A stretch of 63,260 bases of DNA, counting the filler, from Intoshia linei (taxonomy: Eukaryota; Animalia; Orthonectida): assembly GCA_001642005.1 (NCBI GenBank). It is 5 parts of 5 records of this genome, joined end to end, with 100 filler letters (N's around TTAATTAATTAA, not from the genome) between each part and the next. Parts side by side here need not be neighbours in the genome. Positions count along the whole stretch, not along the records: positions 32,523 to 56,017 come from LWCA01000560.1; 4 more parts are not named here. One strand, given 5' to 3'. Shown piece after piece: positions 35,485 to 54,187 of this stretch; within the stretch, counting starts at the first letter, position 1, and every line of letters begins with the position of its first letter. Below the pieces are notes generated by a model. It saw only the letters and a list, made by a program, of their open reading frames with translations. It did no database searches and was not told the origin of the DNA. A program made the position numbers and the translations under genes.

Positions 35485-38400
35485 ATGACGTACAGTGCTG
35501 TTCCTTGTCGTAATAATTGTGGATTTTATGGAAATGAAAAAAATCTTAATCTTTGTTCAAAGTGTTTTAACGAGTCAAAACGTCCTACTGAACCAAAATT
35601 GTTAACTTTTAAAGAAAAGCTTGCAAAAAGGTATATTAATAGCAAAAAGCCTTGAAAGTACTTGTAAATTTATATTACAATTTGTAATGCTGTTAATCGT
35701 TTGAAATGCAATTATTTGTTATTCAAACAAACTTTTTTGATTATGACAACATTTACAAAATAAATGTCTTATCAATATAAAATTTAGAAAAGATATGTTT
35801 AAGGCAGAGCAATTCCGTTCATTTGATCCCATTTCATTTGTTAAAAAATATGTTTTGGAATATGGTTACTTTTTAAATAAAAAAATTATTTTAGATATTA
35901 TAATTTGATAAAATTGACTGCATTTTTTAGATACTGCGGATAAGGACCCTAAACCGGTTAATGTAACACGTAAACTAAAAAAAAAGTCAATTTCTGATAA
36001 ATTTGTATCATATTTAAAAACTTTTAATAAGCCAATTATTCATGATATGACGGTTTTAATTAAAGAAACTAGTAACAAAATTTCTCTACAAGACAATTCG
36101 AAGGATCTTGATGGTCTTGCAATTATCATGGCCGAGTTTTATCAACTTTTTAATGATAGGATGGAAAATTGCGATATTTATAAAGGTTTGTTAAGATTAA
36201 AGATTTAAAATTGAGATTCTTGTTGAAATAACTTTGTAATGGGATTCTAGATAGTAAGGGTACAATTAGTGATTGTGCCGGGGAAAAAAACCGGGACAAA
36301 ATTCCCGGAATATTTAATAATTTCTCGGTATTTTTACGATTTCCCGGGATTTTCCGAAAAAAATTGAGACATACCTGTATTTGATTTATGTTTGTTATTA
36401 CTATGAAAATATGATTATATTATAATATCTAAAATGTACTATTTTAAAAATCCCGCCACTAATAAAATTTAATCAAAAATACCATTTACCATTACTTATA
36501 GAAAAATTGTCTTACACCGATATTCTTTTCAAAAATCCGATTTTACCAAATCTTAAGAAAAAAATCTAATTTTTCAGCCCTTAATGGAAAAATATCCTTT
36601 TTCCAATACTTTTTTTAAAAACCTCTTATTCCAACCACAAATTACTAACACTCAAGAGAATTCTTATCTTTTTCCAATATTATTTTGAAAAATATGAGTT
36701 ATTACGAATTGGAACGCTATCATCAAGATTGTTAAAATTAAAGGAAGCTCTTATGACCGTTCAACTATACACAGATCAGAAAAATTTTACAAAATCATTT
36801 TTTTTCAGTGTACCATAAAATTTTTACAGACTTTGTCCGTTGCTGTACCATACAATTTTCAAAAAAACTACTAAAAGGCATAATAATCCAATAAGCCAAA
36901 ATATATATAGTAAAAATTAAAAATTATCATGATTCATGAATATAAAAAAATCTAGTAGTTCAGAAGCCAGCACTTTCCCCATCTCTGGCCTGTGCCCTGT
37001 GAGATTTAGCGGCATTATTTCCATGTATCTTTAAAACACTTTATTACAACTTAACCATTTTTATTCTATAATTTGAAATTAATAATTCAATTAGAATTAA
37101 CTGAACGTGATAAAAAGAATTTGGTCAAAGAAATTGAAATTTACTTGTCGTGTCAATTCTATCATTTTGTTTTCGATAAAAGCTTGGCATATCTTGAAAC
37201 TGCAGATTTGGAATTTCAAATGAAAATTCGAAAATTAGCGTGGGTCAATGCAACTGTTCTCGGTTCGCTGTTTGACGAAGAAAATAGTCAAGTTAAACCG
37301 ATTTTTGATCAGGCCATAGAAAGTATTATTCAATTTTTGTAAAATACATTATTGCAGAGTTTCTAGATGTTGGAATTTTATTTTAAAGTTTAGACGACCG
37401 CTAAATTATCAGTTTAAAAATTATACATTTCTCTTACCACTAATAAAATTTAATATAAAATAGCATTTCAAGTCTTTTATGTAAAAACCCTTATATATAT
37501 GTATATCAGTTATTGCCCCGAATTTTAAATTGTGTAATTATGTATACTTTTTTTATAATTTGAGAATGAAAAAAAGTCGAAAAAAATATGCGACAAAAGT
37601 GCTCTAATGCTTTCTAATTTACAGCAAAATAGGTACAATAATTTATTTAAAACATAATGTTATAATTTTAATAATGAGTTCTTCCACCAATATTTGTAAT
37701 AACTTCAAAAATTCTAGAAAGCATACTTGCAATTAAGGTGTTAACCTTGGGTTGGCCAATAGAATTCCAAGCTCTCTATGGCTGATCTCAGATCTTTTAA
37801 ACATTTATATTGTTTTCCATCTTTATATACAATCCCAGTCATCATTCCCCATATATTTTCTATTGGGTTTAGATCCGGTGAGCATGGTGGCCACGGAAGA
37901 ACAGTAATATTTTTACGATTTAACCATTCTTTAGTCATTTTAGACGCGTGTATAGGTGCATTGTCTTGTTGGAATATTCTCAAATTCGTTTTGCAAGGAA
38001 GTAAGAATTCATTTAGTATTGTTTTATATTTTTCAGAGTTGAATTTTTCGTGTGTAAAACATAATTTAGTTTTAAATTTTTTTCCAAATCCTCCCAAACC
38101 ATTACACTGTTACCTCCACGTTGTTCTTTCCTACGTTTTTCATCGGAAAAACATATTTGATTCCAATTAATGGACATATTGGTACGAGCAAAAAGTACCC
38201 TTTATTCTATGTGGAGTTTTGTAAGGTTTGGGCATTTTATCATGACTCTTCGTTGAATGTTCGGTGAGGAACATAATTCCCGTTGTATCGTCCGAGTGGA
38301 AACGTCATTAAAAGAACAATTTGATTTTATTGAACTAGCACTAAGACAAGAATTAGACGCTTCTCGCAATAAAAGTTGTCTATTAGATGGACTTAATGTC

Positions 38401-39748
38401 TTTGGGCATCCAATTTTATTATTTAATTTTTTTGACGAACGATTATTGAGATACGTTTGTATGCACTTCCTACTTTTTGTTACTGCAATTTTCGACTGGC
38501 TATGCCCTTCCTTTATCATATAATTAATAATTCCCTTTTGTCGTTCATTTAAATATTTTCTTTTAGACATCTTTATTAAAAATTGTGTATTCTATATGTA
38601 TTTATGAATTAGATATATTTTGAAATTAAAAAATTTAGCTTTAGTGCTAATTAATACCTAAAATATAATCTCTTAGAGCACTTTTGTCGCGTGATCAATA
38701 ATGAAAATAAATATTTTGGGGTAATTAGCGATGAATAATTGCAATAAATTATATTTATACACTTTGAAATGTCATATGTAAGTGACATTTATTAAATTTT
38801 ATTTTAATTTTTATCCAGAAAATGGTTTTAATAGCATTTTTATAAGGTGCTTTAACGTTTTGTCGGGGTGTAATTGATTAAATGTAAAGATTGAATACAC
38901 TGGTTTATGTTTACTCCTTTGATTTTATTTTTGATATTTTTAGCTATAATTTTGATGGATACAAAATGCTCACCGTATGAAAAATTGCAAGTTGTTTCAG
39001 GTATTTTTTTGAAATGTCAATTTAATCTAATTAGATACATGTCATTTATTATTTAATGCCATTGGCTTAAATGGAAACAAGCACCCAAATCAAGTACCCA
39101 CGGATGAATTTTTATCGTCATTAATATTATTAATTATTCGTTCTAACCCTTCAAGATTGAAAGCAAATTGTGAATACATTCAACGACTTACATATACCAA
39201 TAGATTACAATTTGGAGAAAGTGCCTTCTTTTTTGTTAATTATGTATTTACATTTAGATTTAAGTTATATTATTTAATTCAATTTTTAGAATTCCGCAAT
39301 AAGCTTTATTGAAAGTATATCTGCCAAATCGTTGAACATTGAATCTCGCCGATTTAAAAATTATATGAATGGTACAGCTTTCCCTCCATCTCACATTTAC
39401 AAATGTGATGGAATTAGACATTTAAAATCTAACGAAAAGAGATTAGCTAGTTTAATTGAAAAACAAGAGTAAGTTTTATTTTACCCTTTGGTATACATTT
39501 GTATTTTTATCATTTATAGACGTTTACAACAGGCTGAGATCAAAATTAAAATAAGCTTTGATGCTTTTATCGCCGAGAGATGCAATCAGTTTTCTGAATT
39601 GAATTCTACATTGGATAATTTTATTAGTAAAATTAAAGACGATTCATTGGAAGATACGGAATCAAATTCTGAAATGGAAAACAGCACAATTAGTCTGGAT
39701 GATAATCTACCTGAAACTGACAATTTGCCGCCACCCCTTATACCTTAA
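35485..39748 (+). CDS. RABGEF1: Rab5 GDP/GTP exchange factor (Rabex-5)
   Basis: A20 zinc finger CRNNCGFYGN...LCSKC, helical bundle DLEFQMKIRKLAWV, VPS9 domain TDEFL...NPSRLKAN..YI.R...GE..FF.N..AISFIE, and C-terminal NLPPPLIP*. Confidence 0.92.
37507..38873 (-). mobile_element. Tc1-like element with a disrupted transposase, in a RABGEF1 intron
   Basis: ORFs 38202-38570 (HTH) and 37741-38097 (FQQDNAPIH, WPPCSPDLNPIENIW). Inverted inner repeats gcgacaaaagtgctctaa / ttagagcacttttgtcgc. Confidence 0.9.
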
Positions 39749-40212: not shown

Positions 40213-41573
40213 TTAAGGTGCCAATCTAGAAAAGTTCCAACTGTCATTAGATTCATTAAGACAATAAGAAAATCTATCATGAAGTCTAGATCCTTGTCCC
40301 TGCCAAAATTCAAAATTTTTTGGTTTCAAACAATAACCTCCCCTAAAATAATAAATATTATTATATTAAAATGAATTAAAAGGGTGGATATAAATAAACT
40401 CAATTAAAAACCAATAAATACACTTTTTCATGGTTTTGTGTCGACCTTGGTCCATAACATCAAGTCAACTTATTCATTTTTTACATAAGAAAGTGTAACA
40501 TTATTAAAGAACAAAGTTTATCTTAACCAGTAGTCTTTCAGGGTTCTGGGGACGATAAAAATCAAAAGGCACTAAGATCGTCGCGTTTGGTTTAAATTTC
40601 ATAAATAATACATGACGCCTCATGGAAATGAATGTGTCACTGCTTCATTATCATTAAAATTGTTTAAATAATTTTTTAATTTGTAAGTTTCGGATTATAA
40701 TTTTTCCACCACTCTGTATATTGTACAAATACCAATAGTCTGGTTTTTTCAAAATCAGCTGATCTTTATACACTTCTCGACGTTCTTTGAGTTCCTAAAT
40801 GTTAATTGTAATGACAAACTAAAATGGCAACATTTAAAGAGATACTTTCACTTTGTGGACTAATAATTGCATCAATTTGATTAATTCGCGGTCTAGATTG
40901 GAAATATTCATTAGAATCATTAATAGAGGTTTTAGCTACGACACCCTCGATTCTAATCTTAATAAAAGTTAAAATGTAGTATTTTTTTCAACTTGTCTAT
41001 GTAAGGAAGGCCAAAAAAACAATAGTGCTGCTGAATCGTTCATTTTCTAATTTTTAAAATATAAATCATGAATTAATTAACATTACCAAGTCATTTCCTT
41101 TTCTACTTTTGTAGTTTGTATAAAAAATAACACCGTCATCAGAAAATCCACGCATCAATACCATCCGTAATGATGGTTTACCGTTACTAAATTTTGATTA
41201 AAAGTTATTACTTTTAATACGGATTGGCAGTAGCTAAAGACATTGCATTTGGCTCTTTAATACAATCTTTAGCCAAATTGTACCATTCTTCAAATAGTCG
41301 GAATGGATTGGCTTCTTTGTATGAGATTTCATTCAATCTGTCATTAGATCCAAAATATTCATATCGAGTATATCTTACTATAATGTTGTTTAAGTTTATT
41401 AATATGCAATTAGTTTTCCTTGAAAACATTTTAATTTCACGGAATAAATTGTATATTTAAAAATTTTAACAATATACCACTTTCATCCATGCTTCCAAAG
41501 CTAATATCTATAATTAAGGATAATATTCATAGAAACAAAATAATCATGTTCTACTTTTGGACAAAATGCACAT
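40213..41573 (-). CDS. PNPO: Pyridoxine/pyridoxamine 5'-phosphate oxidase
   Basis: [18 protein letters not shown]|[19 protein letters not shown]|[11 protein letters not shown]|IRIEG..YFQSRP..SPQS|KPDYW|GGY..EFWQG..RLHDRF..RLAP*. The start codon is uncertain (41573, 41490 or further upstream). Confidence 0.93.
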
Positions 41574-42210: not shown

Positions 42211-45200
42211 ATGAAAAATTATTTATACATAACTATCTTGATCTTATGTTTATTAGTTTATTTGAACGGTAATTTTGAACCATGTTAAAAATTTGTAAAA
42301 ATTAATTTCAAATAGGTTGTAATCTTAATGAATATATTGTTAAGGATTGGTTTAAATCATATTGCAAACGTAGGATTATCTCAATTAATTAACTAAAAAG
42401 TTATTTAGGTTGTCCTTATTTATGCGCATCCTGCAAAATAGGTGGTCCTATCGGTCATTGTGATTCTTGTTATGATGGTTACTACCGATCATTTGGTTAC
42501 TGTAAAAGTAAAAAATAAATTATACATTATTACATATTCCAATTTTAAGATATTAATTTCATTTTTTTATAAATTGTTAGTCATAAAATAAAAATAGTCT
42601 TTCTAGCACCACTAAAATTTATTCTAGCGCCCCTGTTAACAAACTCTGAGTAAACGTTTAACATGTTGTCTTTTCACGGGGTATATACTTTTGTGATATA
42701 ATTAAGGTTATATTGATTAATTTACATTTTTATATTATCGATATATCAATCAATATTATATACTAGATTGACTGTTATGTACTACGTACAAACAGCACCT
42801 AGCTCTGCCAAGGGCACATTTTTAGTCTACCAAAAAAAGAAATTCACGTTGAAAATCTAACTTAAAAATCCTACTATTCACTATTATCAATCCATTAAAG
42901 GAGTGGTTCCCAAACCTGTTTCAGGTGATCAAATGTTAACAAACAAAAAATTAAGATGGAATAATTCACTTTAAAGTAAAAAGTAATGCGATGTGATGGT
43001 TCCACCTGAAACAAGTTTGGGAACCACTCTTTTAAAGGATTGATAATAGTGATTAGTAGGATTTTTAAATTAGACTTTCATCGTGAATTTCTTTTTTTGG
43101 TAGACTAAAAATGTGCCCTTGGCAGAGCTAGGTGATGTTGGTGCGTAGTACATAACGGTCAACCTAGTTATTATTACAATATTAATAAACTTATTATAAT
43201 ACATGTAATCACTATTTACTAAATACTGTATCGTATTATATCACAATATTTGAATAGGATGCCACTCTGTATGTGCAACATGTAACGGAGAAGGATTAAA
43301 AGACTGTATTACATGTTCTGTTGGATTTTTAACCCAAGATCTTATTTGTAAAAGTAAATTTAATATTGAATTGATTAGGTTTATTATTCTTACCCAAAAC
43401 GATAAATAAATTTACTATGTATCTCATATTAGATTTCACATTTAAAAAATTCTCGTCACATTTCGGTGGCCAGTGGCCACCAGTATAATTGTGTGCCTAA
43501 TTATTAACCAATATTATATATTTCATATTTCAGCTTGTAAAACAAATGAATATATCGAAACTAATGGAGACGCATGGTATTGTGCTGGTATTTACAGAAA
43601 CATTAATATGCATAAAATAGTAATATTCTAGCCTGTGATACATCATGTCAAACTTGTAGTGGCCCTCAATATAAAGAATGCATTCAGTGTCCGTTTGATA
43701 GATATAAAAATAGATACCATGAATGCCAGAGTTATATTAATATTGTTCATACATTTTTATTACATTTTAGAATGTGGGAAGAGAGAATTTTTAGATTCAC
43801 CAAATGAAGACAGACAATGTGCAAGTAAATATTAAATATAGACATTCAGGTGTGCATTAAGTTTGATAGTTTCGGTTTTATTAGAAAATTTTAATCATTA
43901 TTGACACCTCGAAATAATAATGTCGTTTATTAAATTAAAAAATATATTTTTAAATGCCTCATTTGGAAAAATAAGTTTTCATTGCACAAAAAGTTTGTTA
44001 TATATGTCTCTCCCGAAGAAGGTATCGGGTAGAGTATGTTCGGCTCTGTATTAATATGCAAAAATGATTTCTATATTTTTTTTCTAAAAAAATAGTGGGT
44101 GCGTAGAAAATTATAATCTAACTAAAGCAGGGCGCACAACCTTTTCAACAATTTAGCCGCAAAGCTATTTTACTCATTGATACTACAAAATAAAAATATT
44201 TTAAATTATCCTTGAATAAAATCTGATTAGAATTTTATCAATTTGACGTAAAATGGTATACATGATAAACAGTCAAATATATTTTATTGCACAATAAAGC
44301 AAATACAAAATTTAAATTAAGTGATTTTAAAAGTTTTTAATTTGAAGTAAAGTGATATGTTGCATTATAATCACATGGATTTCTCACGGCCGCAGGTAGT
44401 GCATCCCTGAACTAGAGGGTTCGGTAATATGTTTTTGGGCCACTAACATACATCACGACTATAAAATTAATGTCACTGTTAAAAATCGAATCAATTTGAT
44501 ATTTTAATTAACTTAATATTAATTAATGGTAAACTTACATATTTTTTACTATACCCGTCTGACTTGAAGTATCTAAAATCTGAAATGCAAAATTTGTCAA
44601 ATATACGTTTGCCATAATGCTCATTAATTAATTATAAAATTATTTATTTACTGTTAATGTTAATATAGAATGTCATAAATCATGTAAAACTTGCATCGAA
44701 AGATCTACAAATTGTTTGACTTGTAATTCGGATAAATTTATGACCGAAAACAATGTTTGTTCCCGTAATTTATAACTACAACAGTTTATTTATATTAGCG
44801 GTTCATCAATGATGGTACTGACACACAGAGTTTATATTTACACTTGTGTGAGCCTGCAACTCATACTTTTTTATTTGATAACATTATATGCAATACAAAG
44901 CATTTTTATAAGGTTTGGTGAAATTACTAATGTCCATAGTTGCACAATGTGCAACTATGTGCAATAGGGCTATTCTAATATTTTAATATAAAAATGACAT
45001 ACATAGAAAATGAGAACCGGTTAATTTCCTGCAGAATGATATTAATCAGTGTTAATAAATTTAAATATAAATTTTACTACAAATTTTCAATTTATCTAAA
45101 CTAAGTGGCCAGAAAAATACGTACTGTCACTTTTAGTTTATTTTGGAATAAATTTTAAGCCGAAAATTTTTATTTGTCTACAATGGTACTTAAAAAATAT

Positions 45201-48200
45201 TTGAGCAAAAGCATTTAAAATATTTGACCCAATTCATATAAATTAATGTCTTTTTTTTGAAATTATATAATTTTTTTTAAAATGAATTTGTCCGTAAAAG
45301 TGTCTAAAATAAACGATTTTTTATTGATATTTAACCATTTAATATAATATGATAATAATAACATGATTAGTGTCACATAATTTATGTTATATCTTAAAAT
45401 TATAACAAATACAAGGCAATTACGGAATAAAAAATGTTGCCATATTTTTTTACTATGAAAAATGTTAGGAAAACTGAAAAAAGTAAAGACGCGGGGGTTT
45501 TTTGTTACAAAAATAAAAAAAATATATCATTCTGCAACAAATTATTATCTATATACTATGTTTTTTTTAAATTTCAAAAAAAAGTCCAAATTGTAATGTA
45601 ATGTGTATACTATACACATTAATTTATGGACTAATATAACTTATAACATTATACACTGATTAAACTTTTGATTCGGCAAAATTCTACTTACCTTGAAGAG
45701 GCTCTTGAAAACGCATAAAAAAATGTTGTTCCCATGGAAATGTTTTTTATTTTTTGAACGTATCTAATACACGTATATGTATAATATACATTATATATAC
45801 ATGTATACATAATCGAAATCTTGCAGCCTGTGGGCCGCTATTGTGAAACCCTTACTATCTACAATTTGCAGTGTATTTTTAATAATAAATGTAAATAGCA
45901 TGTCACAGATCCTGTAAAAAATGTAATGGAAGCACAGCTAATGATTGTACGCATTGTGATGAATACAGATATTTAAATGATGACTCCGAGTGTGCCAGTA
46001 ATATTAAGAAATATTATAAAAATATCAATAAATGTGTTAAATGTATTTTAGTATGTCCAAGTACTGGTCACATAAGTATCACAGATGAAGAAACAAGACA
46101 TGGAAATTGTCAAGGTATATTATAAAGACTATACGACAGAGTCTAAATCTACAATTTATCTTATAGTTTGCCTCGAAAATGAATATTTAGTTATTTTGAT
46201 TCCTGAAAAACAAATTGGATATTGTAAACGTAATTTGGTAATTTCCAAAAGCTAAACAAATTTTAGAGTGTGATCAACATGAATTTTTAACAATCACGGA
46301 TAAATCAATAAAAAAAGGGTTCTGTACAGGTTAATTACTTACTTAAAATATGAAAATGTACTTTTAATATATGATATACAATGTATGTATGTAATAACTA
46401 TATAATTCATAGAATGCCACGAAAATTGTAAAACGTGCAGTGGTGTTTTAAAAACAGATTGCTTAGATTGTATCGGTACCAAATACTTGTCATCAAATTT
46501 TGAATGTCTACGTAATTTTATTTTTTCTTGTATCAGATGTTTACATTAGTTTTGGCGATATATAAAAATTTACCGGTAAAAATGTTTCTGTAAATTAAAT
46601 TATGTAAATATTATAAATATAATTGTATTAATCTATTTATTTTAAATTATGATTGAATCTTTTTTATTGCAATGTCTATTACTATAATCATTAATGTGGT
46701 ATATGAACCAAACCATATAAATATTATATATCTTTGAAACCAGCGTTAAATTATCTACAAGATATTATTTAGGTATTATTTTTATGCAAATCTATTTTTC
46801 AGTGTAGACTAGTGTTATAAAAATTAAATTTGTTTTTAATATTTTAATAAAATTTACTTCATACATAAAATGTATCGGTAAATTGCCAAACATAATTTAC
46901 ATACTCCACTTTTTAATTATATCAGATATATAATAATAAATATGTAATTATATAAATAAAATTTTATTTAAATATTTCATGTGTGAAGTTTTAAAAACTG
47001 GTCAAGTAGAATTTTTTTATATAAAAAAGTGGACTACGAGATGAAAAAGGTTGCCGACCCTGCTTTATATAATGTATACATTTATATATATCCGGCACAG
47101 AATCTCTTAAGTATCCTTAATTTTTTGGTTGACCATTTTTATCCATGTGAATTGAAAATATCCACATATACAAATGTAGATTCTAAATTGTTATTTAGCA
47201 TGTGAAAATGGGTATATACAAAGAAAAGATACCGAAAATGAGTATAACTCGTGTCAAGGTAATCATTATCTAAAACTACAGTCCAACCCGGTTTGGGCGA
47301 ACCTTTGAATAGGGGAACCCTCGATTTTTTGCGTACTTTTTCAATATAGTGTTAGTTTTATAGTATTGTGTACTATTTACTATATATTAGTGTCAAATAC
47401 ATCTTGTTTTGTGGCACTTTATTTTTTAACAAAAATTAAATTATATATAACAAAAAATAGAAATAGCTAAATTGAAAGCTTTAAAATAAAAAGTTGTTTG
47501 AACGAAAACTATATGTAATTTATGCAACGAGTAAAGGAACAATATCTGGAATTAAAAATGAAATTGTACCACTTTTGAGTAATACAGTAATGAGTTTTAG
47601 TTTTGATGAAGCAATAATGTCAACAAGCCGACTTAATTTTTTGTTGTTTTTTTGATTTGAAGATAATTTAAAATTTTGATACCAAATTTTATTAAGAATT
47701 TTATGAATATAGAAAAACAAACATATAAGATTTATAACACGGTGCAACAAAATAAAAAATTTTTAAAGGTAACCGAATAATTTTAATTTAGTAGTGATCT
47801 ACTCATTACAATGGTATATAATATTACATTTTTACAGATCGTTAAACTCACATTATATATACGTGAAAGTGCGCATTTTAATAAAAAAGTGTTCTATGCA
47901 AGTGTAAATTAATATAAATGTGTAAATCTGATTTAAAAAAAAAATTTCATTAATATATGAGTTATTTTGGGTGGCTTTACGATTCTATAATTTTAATTTA
48001 TATTTGTCATCAGAAATCATTAAAATCAATGACCATTCAATTTGGTTTTTTTTGAGATAAAATAATAAAATTTAAAAATATGGAAGATTCATTCATTAGC
48101 TATTTTTTACACTTCACTGGTTGGTTCAGATCAGCCGCCATAAAGAAATTTTCATTTTAAATTATGCACGTTAAGAAATAAACTGAAAAAAATTAAAATA

Positions 48201-51200
48201 ATGACAGAAAACATTAGAATGACAAACAAATCGTTGGAATATTGTTGTATTTTATTAAAATTTTATATTAACCAATTAATATATATACATATTAATGTTT
48301 TACCGAGATCATTCACAAAAAATCTCAAAATTTAAATTATTACCTCAAAATAAGTTCATGTGGGTTAAAATAGTCATGTAAATATCTAGAATTTTAAAAG
48401 ATGCAAAAATTTTCGAAGACGATCACTAAAAAAAATCTGAAAAAAACTACCTACTCCATGAACTGAGACCATTATAATCCTTAGTTATATATAATATGCT
48501 TTGTTTGTCTGTATGTGTTATCGTTTATTTCAATAACTACCAGTCTTAGAATTTTATTTTGTCCACATTTCTATTAGTGTTATTTGCAGGGTGAAAGTAA
48601 GATAAATTTCAACTTTCCCAACCTCACATATTATGGGTCAAAACGCCCAATTGTACTTTTTTTTGAAATTCAAACGTGTTCAAGAATTTAAAAAAATAAA
48701 TCTTCAAGGCCAAAACCTCAAATGACCCTTTTTTTTAATGAAAACAGCTCTAGAATTTAAACAAATTTACAGGTGGTACAGTTGTATCCTGTTAACACAC
48801 ACACAAAAATTTCAAGCTGATTAAGCAACGCATTCACGATCAAAAAAACACTTTAGTACATATTTGAATTCATATTTTTTACTTTGAAACTATTTAATTA
48901 AAACAAAAAATGTGAAATAATTAACAGTTTAAAAATTAAAAAAAAAATTAATATGATAGAGCTTATTCCAGTTGATATAAATACAAAATTTCAATCCCAA
49001 AAATCTACGCATTCCCGGTAAAAAATAATTTTTAATATATTATCAACCAATGTTTTTCAAATATTTCGATTAAAATAAAAATTGAAAATGTAAATATGAT
49101 CCTACAATTTCAAAAAAATGTGCATTTGAACGTCTACACATTTTCAATAAATATAAGTGAAATTCTATATAATTCATTCTTTTGGAATTTTATTCATTGC
49201 TACGCAATTTTTAAATATTAAATTTTCATTTTTAAAACATTTTGTTTAAAATTTAAATTAAAACTACAACAACGAATTACTAAAAGTATACAACTTTGAT
49301 TATTATTATTTAATTAAATACTATCATTGTTCAATTAATTTAATATTTTAAAGAATTTTATTATTACCTTCAGTTTTTGGGGCACTTAGCAAAGAAGGTA
49401 TCCCAAAACGGGGTTATATTGTTTAATGTTTACATAGTGTACGTATAGAATGCACAAAAGGAGAATATCTGTTAATTATAAATGAGGATAACAGAGATGG
49501 AAGATGCAATGGTATTTATTTTTATTTTTAAAATTGATGTGCAATTTGCATACGATTTGTATTTAATTTACAATAAAAGTATATAGTATGTAATGTGAAT
49601 TGTTTGGAATGCAATGAATCTCCGAATTCTTGTACAAAATGTAGATTTCATGAATATGTCACCCCATTAAAAAAATGTGAAGGTTAATTAAAATCGTACA
49701 ATGCACATTTTATAATTACAATTTAGAATGCTCCCCAGAATGTTTAGAGTGCAATGGACCGACGAGGTTTAACTGTATCAAATGTATCCAACGCTTTTAC
49801 ATCCATGCGGAAGGATTTTGTTCAGGTCAACATTTAAAATCAGTTATTAGAAGTTGATTTTAAAACATACATATTATAAGTTGTTCCAACAGACTGACTA
49901 TTATTTTATAGATAAAGATTACAAATTAAATTAAATTTTAATTGACTCTGAGTCATGAAATTTGTACCGTTATGCTGTCCCATTTTTTTGAAATTGTAGG
50001 ATCAATATTTACATTTTTAATTTTTATTTTAATCAAGATATTTGAAAAATATTGGTTGATGATATAATAAAAATTAATTTTCACTGGGAATGCGTAGATT
50101 TCTGGGATTAAAATTTTGTATTTATATCAACTGGAATAAGCTCTATTAGAATAATTTTTTTTTTTAAAGGTTAAACTTTTGTATTTATATCAACTGGAAT
50201 AAGCTCTATCAGAATAATTTTTTTTTTTAAATTTGGATCGTTAATTATTTCACATTTTTTGATTTAATAAAATATTTCGGAAAAAAATATATAAATACTA
50301 AAATGAATTTTTGACTGTGAAGGCGTCAATTATTCAGATTGAAATTTTTTGTGTGTGGTAACAGGATACAACTGAACAACCTATAAATTTTTTGAAATTC
50401 TAGAGCTGTTTTCATTAAAAAAAGAAGGGTAATTTGAGGTTTTGGCACCCTGAAGATATATTTTTTTTAAATTTAAATTTATGATAATATTTATGATTTT
50501 AAAATTCGTATCAGCGTATAAATTATTTTAGATTCTCTAACTCGTTGGATTTTTAAAAAAAAGTACAATTGGGGTTTTTGATCCGTAATATGTGAGTTTG
50601 GGAGGTTAAAATTTATTTTGCTAACACTCCCGGAAAAAACTGTAATTGAAATGTGGACTTTATAAAATTCTAAGACTGGTTGTTATTGAAATAAAGTAGA
50701 ACACACACACAAACAAATATTGCGTAGAATATTATATAAGTATGGATAATTATAAATTTACATATTAATATTAAAATTTTTAGAATGTAATAAACTTTGC
50801 TATAATTGTTTTGGAGGTCAGTCAAACCAATGCTTATCATGTCATTCCAGCATGTATGTTTCAACGTCGCATATATGTGAATGTAAATTTTAATTGATTA
50901 CAAATTTGTGAAATAATACCATGTTATTTTAGCTTGCGATTTAATCGATAATTGTGAACAATGCACTGGAGTAACCTGTGGAAGGTGCTATATAGGATAC
51001 GCAATTATAGAGAAAAAATGCATTCGTGAGTGTTTTATACGTCTTATTTAATTTACATTATTAATTATAAATTATCAAAATAATTAAAATTTTTTTAGCC
51101 TGTAAGTTCTTTAAAAACTGCATAAATTGCAATGGAGATATTTGTACAAGGTGCAATTATGGTTATAGAATTCATCTAAATAATTTATGTTTGCGTATAT

Positions 51201-51759
51201 ATATTCTAAATTAAAATTTCAACACATTTTAAGTATGCCATGTGGACCACTGTTCAAATTGTTACTCCAGTCTAGAAACCTGTAGTATCTGTAAAAATGG
51301 ATTTATCTTGGAAAATAACACTTGCAAGCGTAACATTATTAACTATGATCTAAAGATTTGTTGTATTTTAGCATGTTCCCAGATTGAACGTTGTGTCAAA
51401 TGTCAACTTAATAATTGTGCTGCATGTGAAGAAGGTTTTCATGCAAAACCGAGATATTGTGAAGGTAAACGATATTAAAATTTAACTTTTTTCGTTAATT
51501 TCAATATACTTATAGCTTGCCACGATTATAATTGTTCTTCTTGTAATGAATACTCCGAAGTGTGTGAAATTTGTAAAAAGGGATATTCTCTCAATAGTTT
51601 TGGCACATGTGTCGGTTAGTTTTATATTTTTAATAAACAACTTTATATTAGATTGTTTATCAGAAGATAACTGCATTGGGAAAGATGCTAGGGGTTTTTT
51701 TTAGTTAATAAATTTAATTTTATATTGTAGAAAGTATTTATTTAATTTGTAAACAATGA
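42211..51759 (+). CDS. Secreted furin-like/VSP-like cysteine-rich repeat protein, about 24 exons and roughly 600 aa
   Basis: Signal-peptide exon MKNYLYITILILCLLVYLN, followed by 22 phase 1-1 exons. Thirteen have six Cys (e.g. CHSVCATCNGEGLKDCITC..C, CDTSCQTCSGPQYKECIQC..C) and nine have two Cys (e.g. CKTNEYIETNGDAWYC). The last exon reads ESIYLICKQ*. No protease or TM domain was seen. Confidence 0.85.
42762..43168. repeat. Foldback element: about 166-bp inverted arms around a spacer of about 75 bp
   Basis: Arm 42762-42927 (actagattgactgttatgtac...cccaaacctgtttcaggtg) is the near-perfect reverse complement of 43003-43168. Confidence 0.95.
44128..44409. mobile_element. hAT-type MITE
   Basis: TIRs cagggcgcacaac...gtagtgcatccctg, with an 8-bp TSD (aactaaag/aactagag). 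Confidence 0.65.
47279..47660 (+). mobile_element. pogo/Tigger-like 5' end relic
   Basis: TA-CAGTCCAACCC terminus and a psq-HTH-like stretch YATSKGTISGIKNE near 47521. Confidence 0.4.
48478..49120 (+). mobile_element. Helitron-like family H, plus-strand copy
   Basis: 5' end A|TCCTTAGTTATATATAAT followed by tgtttgtctgtatgtg. It is the reverse-complement homologue of 49981-50746. Confidence 0.75.
49981..50746 (-). mobile_element. Helitron-like family H, minus-strand copy
   Basis: The minus-strand 5' end A|TCCATACTTATATAAT followed by (TG)n is typical of non-autonomous Helitron 5' ends. It carries an internal duplication at about 50116-50228. Confidence 0.75.
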
Positions 51760-52073: not shown

Positions 52074-52420
52074 CTAGGTTGACTGTTACGGTTACTGTTA
52101 TATTAAATATTGACTTGTACTAAAGTGTTTTTTTGACCGTGAAGGCGTTACTTAATCAGATTGAAAATTTTTTGTGTGTTAACAGGATACAACTGTACCA
52201 CCTGTAAATGTTTTTAAATTCTAGGGCTGTTTTCAATTAAAAAAAAATGGTAATTTGTGGTTTTATATCTGAAGATAAATTTTTTTAAATTTAAATTTAT
52301 GATAAATTATCATTGATAATACATGTATGTATTTATAATTTTAAAATCCGTATCAGAGTATATTTTTGTAATTCTCCAATTCGTTTGATTTTTAAAAAAA
52401 AGGACAAAATTAAGAGTTTA
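52074..52420 (-). mobile_element. Helitron-like family H copy carrying the CTAG 3' end
   Basis: actaggttgactgtta (CTAG|T on the minus strand) is joined to the family H core. A similar join occurs at 56350-56530. Confidence 0.65.
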
Positions 52421-53184: not shown

Positions 53185-54187
53185 CAATGCACGCAATAAA
53201 CATATTCCAACTGATTTATATTAATTTTTGGTCTATTAACATTAATTTTCATGAATATTTCATCTCTATTAAAAAAGGTATTAAAAAGTACGCTTGTTGA
53301 TACCATTATTTTTCCTTTGCCACTTTGATATGAAAAGATATTAGACAAATCGCTAATTAGCCGCGCAATAAACATAGGACACTTCACATTAAAATCACTT
53401 TTTTTATACAAATAATTACAAAAAATACAATTTGGACAGTTCTGATGGATTCCAGTTTTATTGGCATGATCTACGAAAGGAAAAAGAAGTCTACTCTACG
53501 CGGCAAAGTGGAGGTAGATCAGTAATGGTCTGGGAACATTTTCACAGAAAGGAAAATTCTGAATGGAAATCAGAACTCTGAGGATTATATTTTTACCTTA
53601 TCTGAATTTCTACTTATATTTGCTCACTTTCATTATCGTACAGATTACATTTTTCAACAAGATAATGCTCCAATCCACACTTCTGGTAAGGTCAAAACAT
53701 GGTTTGAAGAACATTCTGTTAATGTAATGAACTGGCCATCGAAGTCTGCTGACCTTAATCCTATAGAAAACTTATGGGGAATTTTGGCAAGGTCCGTATA
53801 CAAAAATGGCAGGCAATTTAAAAATAAGGATACTCTGACGCAGATAATATTGACAGAATGGGAAAATATCTATAAAGATGTTATTGAAAAGTTAGTATTG
53901 ACAATAAAGGATAGATGCCTTGAAGTTGTGATCAATAAAGGAGAAAAGACACATTATTAAATTGTAAATACATTATTTTAATTTGAGGTGTCTTATGTTT
54001 ATTGCGCGGCTAATTAACGATTTGTGTGATAACTTTTCATAAAAAGGTGGCAGAAGAAAAATAATGGTAATTAACAAGCGTATTTTTTAATATTTTTTTT
54101 AATAAAGATGAAATATTCATGAAAATGAATGTTAATAGACCAAAAAATAATATAAATCGGTTGGACCTATGTTTATTGCGCGCACTG
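53185..54187 (+). mobile_element. Internally deleted Tc1-like element with long (about 200-bp) TIRs
   Basis: TA-caatgcacgcaataaacata ... tatgtttattgcgcgcactg-TA. It retains YWHDLRK, FQQDNAPIH and WPSKSADLNPIENLW but has no HTH half. Confidence 0.9.

Follow-up and report, generated by a model that had tools for sequence, protein, structure and literature searches.

The 63,260-nt window analyzed here, joined from parts of five records of the orthonectid Intoshia linei (GCA_001642005.1), contains from position 42211 onward a plus-strand gene of 24 exons and 23 introns, which is represented in GenBank by the 352-aa hypothetical protein A3Q56_04419 (OAF67853.1, hereafter P0001). With a probability of roughly 70%, this gene encodes a protein of ~646 residues made of furin-like (FU) repeats only, which is probably secreted, is likely a rod stapled by disulfides that has structural or binding tasks in the extracellular space, and is by default spliced constitutively. 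Its exons follow a strict grammar with an FU-type Cys pattern, its product has a match at the family level, one paralogue is present in the same genome, and the deposited model leaves part of the gene out. Metazoan extracellular modular proteins are typically marked by the shuffling of 1-1 exons and by an intron in phase 1 behind the signal peptide (PMC7259759). As the layout of the gene matches this classical type, it is read as a gene for a probably secreted furin-repeat protein with default constitutive splicing. The architecture is of an already known kind, built in a known way, and the protein is a lineage-restricted member of that kind.

Exon and intron structure of the gene

The gene lies in the piece 32523-56017 (LWCA01000560.1; 23,495 nt, ~27% G+C), which is a whole I. 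linei contig. Exons were searched as segments with AG/GT borders, a length that is a multiple of 3 nt, an open phase-1 frame and an x-Cys start; a stricter search on both strands of the whole piece required an x-Cys start, a Cys-x end and 2 or 6 Cys. All 23 introns of the resulting model are in phase 1, and in all 22 internal exons a split codon comes first, directly before a Cys, and Cys-x plus one base comes last, so that an identical C-x-x-C link is restored at each junction. Six Cys are carried by 14 of the internal exons (93-99 nt) and two by the other eight (54-63 nt), and a short two-Cys terminal exon follows (Table 1). The strict search returned 23 candidates, namely the 22 exons and one nested sub-candidate, all on the plus strand, and none in the ~14 kb of the piece outside the gene or on its minus strand; likewise, a six-Cys regular expression had exactly 14 matches in the piece, each of them within the gene. 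The exon pattern is far beyond chance. An initial annotation of this DNA had described a signal-like exon followed by 22 internal phase 1-1 exons with x-Cys starts, which was confirmed by the exon search and by the 13 exons found in P0001; its counts of 13 six-Cys and nine two-Cys exons were corrected to 14 and eight internal exons, its ninth two-Cys exon being the terminal module from 51652.

The summed exon lengths gave 1,942 coding nt, corresponding to ~646 residues with 103 Cys (15.9%). Exon 1, with its ATG at 42211 and a phase-1 donor gtaatt directly after 42268, encodes the hydrophobic peptide MKNYLYITILILCLLVYLN, which was judged by eye to be signal-like, and the protein is probably secreted; no sizeable open reading frame (ORF) was found upstream of this exon, between 41.8 and 42.2 kb. 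Many introns measure 37-54 nt, and such very short introns fit the I. linei genome, since the median intron there is 57 bp, with ~5 introns per gene (PMC6543705).

P0001 is a protein without exons 1-5, 15-18 and 20-21. The 13 exons that it shares with the present model, and the 12 junctions between them, match it letter for letter, so that an independent gene predictor picked the same splice sites.

Identity of the modules

The 14 six-Cys exons were aligned with six invariant Cys, the consensus CxxxCxxCxGxxxxxCxxCxxGxYxxxxxxC and the spacing C-x3-5-C-x2-C-x4-8-C-x2-C-x9-12-C, while the eight two-Cys exons share C-x15-18-C with an (E/G)(Y/F)(I/L) motif. The FU-repeat Cys skeleton, a six-Cys unit with an optional C-x12-18-C hairpin, was thus found in 14 modules and eight hairpins. 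By their Cys patterns, the modules are read as FU repeats, with the six-Cys exon holding Cys a-f and the two-Cys exon the g-h hairpin.

Searches with a full-length protein used P0001 as the query, and exons were searched singly. VSP (PF03302) was the sole Pfam family over threshold for P0001 (35.7 bits, cutoff 31.4); GF_recep_IV (PF14843) scored 16.2 bits, below its cutoff of 29.5, and no match to PF00757 or PF15913 was reported in this search. With single exons, Pfam gave only matches below threshold (VSP, E = 0.009-0.016; look-alikes of the zinc-finger or PSI type), which were rejected as noise. In a protein atlas, P0001 was placed among the 'Furin-like repeat / Giardia VSP' clusters, and the structural neighbours of its atlas model (predicted local distance difference test, pLDDT, 0.78) were the Cys-rich domains of PCSK5/PCSK6 and ciliate VSP-like proteins, at low TM values of 0.30-0.41. 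When the solved structures were searched, the P0001 sequence returned nothing relevant, and a profile built from the 14 exons with six Cys weakly matched the second furin repeat of R-spondin-2 (E = 0.28); a weak match of the same profile to RDS3 was rejected as a zinc-binding CxxC look-alike. No catalytic domain and no transmembrane or GPI segment were found in the Pfam search of P0001 and on reading both candidate C-termini, as the initial annotation had also stated; its description of a Cys-rich, probably secreted protein of furin-like modules agrees with the Cys pattern, the Pfam result and the atlas neighbours.

In R-spondin structures, the FU disulfides join Cys a-c, b-d, e-f and g-h. Because this pattern puts three disulfides in the six-Cys exon and g-h in the two-Cys exon, each exon would be a structurally closed unit. 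In the proposed mechanism, each exon would therefore encode a sub-module whose disulfides are closed inside the exon, the six-Cys exon providing three of them and the two-Cys exon an optional g-h beta-hairpin; a single mRNA with all exons, constitutively spliced, would be the default expectation, and its product would be an elongated rod acting outside the cell.

The lengths and the order of the modules bear on their origin. Hairpins of 17 residues are encoded by exons 2, 5 and 7 near the 5′ end and those of 19-20 residues by exons 10-12, 14 and 15 in the middle, and the last five six-Cys exons (19-23) have another spacing, C-x4-5-C-x2-C-x4-6-C, and stand consecutively with no hairpins between them. 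These blocks look like block-wise tandem exon duplication, and the simplest origin of the gene would be that 1-1 exons were duplicated in tandem several times, block by block. Outside the Cys, the modules share ~13% identity (14% in adjacent and 12% in non-adjacent pairs); as neighbours are no closer than other pairs, the gene is no array of recently amplified cassettes, and the modules appear old and highly diverged.

Paralogue and relatives

An exhaustive phmmer search was run with an 81-aa stop-free genomic stretch (51233-51475) that comprises E21, an in-frame 42-nt intron and E22. Six proteins were matched, of which the only Intoshia ones were P0001, the best match, and OAF65152.1 (P0003); the other four, from metagenome samples and a bacterium, were generic proteins with Cys-rich repeats (E = 5e-5 to 2.5e-4). 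Word searches with P0001 and P0003 returned only the queries themselves, the P0001 search spanning 194-616 aa, a range that would miss a 646-aa product. Neither an orthologue nor a large annotated family was detected among the annotated proteins by phmmer and the word searches.

P0003 is encoded on contig LWCA01001422.1 of the same assembly (GCA_001642005.1; hereafter L001) and covers the last three exons only. The exon order is the same, both intron positions and phases are retained, and 14 of 14 Cys are kept over 78 codons. The similarity begins in the intron before the E22-like exon, and the contig edge is 240 nt upstream of that point. No E21-like exon was found in those 240 nt up to the edge (L001 1-267); either only part of the gene is present in this copy or its intron is longer at that point. 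The initial annotation had named a paralogue family with shuffled cassette order as something that would support its idea; a single paralogue was found among the annotated proteins, with exon order and introns unchanged.

Between the paralogues, nonsynonymous (dN) and synonymous (dS) divergences were 0.30 and 1.09, respectively, and the NG86 dN/dS was 0.28 (bootstrap range 0.10-0.55). At 78 codons, the sample is too small to separate relaxed from diversifying selection.

The 3′ end of the gene

Two endings were compared. When the terminal exon is read through, it ends in DARGFF followed by TAG at 51700-51702, and P0001 ends identically; the GenBank protein of the paralogue, P0003, is also read through to a stop at the homologous place (...DAGGLI*). 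The other ending, given in the initial annotation as a last exon with ICKQ* and an unpaired Cys, needs a splice from 51693 into 51731-51759 via the donor GTTTTTTT, and none of the 23 other donors starts with GTTT. One observation speaks for that proposal: the 11-nt block TGTAGAAAGTA at 51727-51737, which holds the acceptor of the 51731 exon, is identical in the paralogue (L001 ~609-619), and the DNA similarity extends to 51748. Against it are the odd GTTT donor, the read-through in both GenBank proteins and the reading frames beyond the block, which differ between ESIYLICKQ* here and a 22-residue AT-rich tail in L001. The block sits 25-35 nt past the annotated stop in both paralogues, and it is either a true acceptor of a small last exon or a signal in the 3′ untranslated region.

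The short read-through ending is regarded as more likely than the splice from 51693 to 51731. An unpaired terminal Cys is therefore unproven, and the suggestion that it allows oligomerization rests on a doubtful exon.

Points against the furin-repeat reading

Several observations weigh against a secreted, constitutively spliced furin-repeat protein. First, dN between the paralogues (0.30, and 0.40 outside Cys) is near the divergence of the short introns (~31% mismatches). The short introns are 68-69% identical and the exons 67-73%; because introns are about as similar as exons, the non-Cys positions may be weakly constrained, and they may even be nearly unconstrained or diversifying. Second, single exons fell below every Pfam threshold, and AlphaFold2 run on P0001 without an alignment gave an unusable model (pLDDT 34). 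Third, the signal peptide call was made by eye, the disulfide pairing was assigned from R-spondin structures, and constitutive splicing is a default assumption. Finally, 23 introns in one gene are unusual for I. linei (~5 per gene; PMC6543705) and may reflect use.

Is the gene combinatorially spliced?

As every internal exon is a multiple of 3 nt and of class 1-1, skipping without frameshift is possible, as the initial annotation pointed out. In other systems, inverted repeats that flank exons can favour skipping or circularization. A combinatorial cassette gene, in which exon skipping would give many isoforms of a varied secreted or surface protein as in schistosome micro-exon genes (MEGs), is nevertheless unlikely here. 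It would be consistent with the symmetry of 22 of 22 internal exons, each with an even number of Cys, with the omission of E15-E18 and E20-E21 from P0001, where the frame is kept and skipping is tolerated on paper, with the inverted repeat copies that bracket E15-E17, with the richness in introns for this genome (23 vs. ~5 per gene; PMC6543705), and with the fast evolution of the non-Cys positions. However, P0001 is a predicted gene model, clearly mis-started, and not an isoform, the same exon symmetry occurs in ordinary constitutive arrays of EGF, FU and similar modules (PMC7259759), the exons measure 54-99 nt and are not micro-exons, and the exon order is unchanged in the single paralogue detected. 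Further, the modules appear ancient and show no recent cassette amplification. Neither the intron richness nor the bracketing repeats are evidence of alternative splicing. The undescribed combinatorial system that had been proposed for this gene is thus not supported, given its textbook layout (PMC7259759), the ~13% identity among modules and the unchanged order in the paralogue; judged by the initial annotation's own criteria, it is not refuted either. No new system of combinatorial variation is evident from the gene.

A narrower version, that the introns were kept because they are used and that skipping, perhaps aided by repeats around E15-E17, would yield varied furin-repeat rods at the host interface, is slightly less probable still and is mentioned as speculation.

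The deposited gene model

The shorter GenBank model would be right if the omitted exons were decayed or unused, with a product of 352 aa that has no signal peptide. It is the deposited annotation, but each of the ten module exons that it leaves out (E2-E5, E15-E18 and E20-E21) is still open in frame, has its full Cys skeleton and is flanked by AG/GT in phase. In addition, its start (MVLCCNILA...) is an ATG within E5 that is out of frame and is spliced to an acceptor lying 11 nt before that of E6 (window 43590-43640), and a furin-repeat protein with 15.9% Cys and no signal peptide would make little biological sense. The shorter model is therefore very improbable, and OAF67853.1 is probably truncated and mis-started.

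Comparison with variant surface proteins

A VSP-like variant surface antigen, serving antigenic variation at the host interface as in Giardia, is the least probable of the explanations considered. Pfam VSP being the sole family over threshold, the organism being a tissue parasite, and VSP-like genes having been claimed in the myxozoan Sphaerospora (bioRxiv 10.64898/2026.02.11.705288) speak for it. VSPs are characterized by a C-terminal transmembrane helix, a short conserved tail (CRGKA or a basic motif) and a large family (bioRxiv 10.64898/2026.02.11.705288). Neither of the two possible ends, ...CIGKDARGFF* or ...ESIYLICKQ*, has a hydrophobic stretch that could form the helix, the tail motif is absent from both C-termini and from the paralogue, and the family, searched by phmmer with E21-E22 among annotated proteins, comprises P0001 and P0003, that is, two detectable members rather than tens. 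With helix, conserved tail and large family all absent, the product lacks the defining features for a VSP-type role in antigenic variation; judging by the atlas neighbours, the VSP model responds mostly to furin-like repeats of a generic, CXXC-rich kind. The Giardia VSPs (PF03302) and the ciliate furin-repeat surface proteins, the nearest atlas clusters, do share with the product a CXXC-rich ectodomain that is preceded by a signal at the N-terminus; in contrast to Giardia VSPs, the gene described here lacks the transmembrane segment, the C-terminal motif and the large family, and its host genome is that of an animal.

Comparison with other modular proteins

The furin-repeat reading places the modules beside those of PC5/6, PACE4 and the FU1/FU2 repeats of R-spondin, which have the same Cys spacing, the same G and aromatic positions (CxxCxG...CxxCxxGY) and an optional hairpin of the CPxGY type. 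Unlike those proteins, the product would consist of repeats only, with no protease, P domain, TSP1 domain or basic tail, and its hairpins are absent after many six-Cys units while two or three follow one another elsewhere. No Pfam match of P0001 to Peptidase_S8 or the P domain was obtained, the repeats directly follow the signal-like exon, and the homologue searches detected no orthology.

Class 1-1 modular proteins such as the EGF arrays in fibrillin or Notch, products of exon shuffling as described by Patthy, share the signal exon, the phase-1 intron, one Cys module per 1-1 exon and tandem duplication (PMC7259759). The difference is that the exon unit here is an FU sub-module (a six-Cys core or a two-Cys hairpin) and not a whole domain, and that the gene stands in a genome otherwise stripped of most introns (PMC6543705).

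With the schistosome MEGs, the gene has in common that all its internal exons are symmetric and that its product is a parasite protein, here probably secreted. MEG exons are 6-36 nt long, they are not known to encode folded modules with disulfides, and protein variation through their skipping was shown experimentally. In contrast, the symmetric exons of the present gene measure 54-99 nt, beyond the micro-exon range, and each is a structural module.

Coordinates, repeats and neighbouring sequences

The coordinates of the exons and of the two main repeat copies are collected in Table 1.

Table 1. Exons of the furin-repeat gene and dispersed repeat copies within its introns (positions in the window).
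Feature	Position	Strand	Basis or remark
Exon 1: start codon and signal-like peptide MKNYLYITILILCLLVYLN, ends in phase 1	42211..42268	+	Donor gtaatttt; not in P0001
E2: two-Cys hairpin, 54 nt	42316..42369	+	Exon grammar search
E3: six-Cys, 99 nt	42409..42507	+	Exon grammar search, six-Cys pattern
E4: six-Cys, 96 nt	43258..43353	+	Exon grammar search, six-Cys pattern
E5: two-Cys, 54 nt; holds the out-of-frame start ATG of P0001	43534..43587	+	Exon grammar search
E6: six-Cys, 99 nt	43632..43730	+	Six-Cys pattern; in P0001 at residue 10
E7: two-Cys, 54 nt	43771..43824	+	Exon grammar search
E8: six-Cys, 96 nt	44669..44764	+	Six-Cys pattern
E9: six-Cys, 99 nt	45899..45997	+	Best single-exon Pfam match is VSP, E = 0.009
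E10: two-Cys, 63 nt	46052..46114	+	Exon grammar search
E11: two-Cys, 63 nt	46167..46229	+	Exon grammar search
E12: two-Cys, 63 nt	46267..46329	+	Exon grammar search
E13: six-Cys, 99 nt	46413..46511	+	Six-Cys pattern
E14: two-Cys, 60 nt, CENGY..., resembles the furin-repeat CPxGY hairpin	47199..47258	+	Exon grammar search
E15: two-Cys, 63 nt	49449..49511	+	Exon grammar search; not in P0001
E16: six-Cys, 96 nt	49587..49682	+	Six-Cys pattern; not in P0001
E17: six-Cys, 99 nt; donor gtcaac, alternative in-phase donor at 49852	49727..49825	+	Six-Cys pattern; not in P0001
E18: six-Cys, 99 nt	50784..50882	+	Six-Cys pattern; not in P0001
E19: six-Cys, C-x4-5-C spacing, 93 nt	50933..51025	+	Six-Cys pattern
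E20: six-Cys, C-x4-5-C spacing, 96 nt	51099..51194	+	Six-Cys pattern; not in P0001
E21: six-Cys, C-x4-5-C spacing, 96 nt	51234..51329	+	Six-Cys pattern; not in P0001
E22: six-Cys, C-x4-5-C spacing, 93 nt	51372..51464	+	Counterpart in paralogue L001, Cys codons at 268-354
E23: six-Cys, C-x4-5-C spacing, 99 nt	51516..51614	+	Counterpart in paralogue L001, Cys codons at 400-492
Probable terminal exon, DCLSEDNCIGKDARGFF and TAG	51652..51702	+	P0001 ends ...DARGFF; homologous end of the paralogue is ...DAGGLI*
Last exon of the initial annotation (ESIYLICKQ*), doubtful	51731..51759	+	Needs donor gttttttt
Dispersed repeat, left copy, intron 14, inverted vs. 50005-50709	48510..49097		Inverted pairs I2, I3, I6, I8, I9
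Same dispersed repeat, right copy, intron 17	50005..50709		Copies bracket E15-E17

The two copies of the dispersed repeat (~600-700 nt), which lie in introns 14 and 17 in opposite orientation, are 83-91% complementary in blocks, and a partial third copy is found at 52116-52264. P0001 happens to skip E15-E18, and the repeat copies bracket E15-E17. Intron 3 contains a palindrome (42762-43168) resembling a miniature inverted-repeat transposable element, with 166-nt arms that are 93% complementary and 75 nt apart; the same repeat family also occurs on the paralogue contig (L001 835-1092). Remnants of Tc1/mariner-type transposases were detected on both sides of the gene, at 37741-38570 on the minus strand and at 53727-53960 on the plus strand (DDE_3, E = 8.6e-16; Tc3-type helix-turn-helix), the latter between the inverted repeats 53206-53404 and 53966-54165. 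A 71-aa ORF with a Met start (41214-41429, minus strand) is arranged head-to-head with the gene, ~780 nt from its ATG; its likeness to pyridoxamine-phosphate oxidase was unconfirmed, as Pfam and solved-structure searches gave nothing.

Meaning of the corrected gene

The practical yield is a corrected gene model of ~646 residues, which adds the signal exon and ten module exons to the deposited one. The corrected gene represents a probably secreted, lineage-restricted protein of an animal that is among the most reduced known, and a very clean case of one sub-module, closed by its own disulfides if the assigned pairing holds, per 1-1 exon, which would be useful for teaching and for studies of exon duplication. 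Its practical value is modest, and interest would grow only with true combinatorial skipping or a localization at the parasite-host interface; if skipping did produce varied rods there, the gene would be a module-sized counterpart of the schistosome micro-exon genes in a parasite largely stripped of introns.

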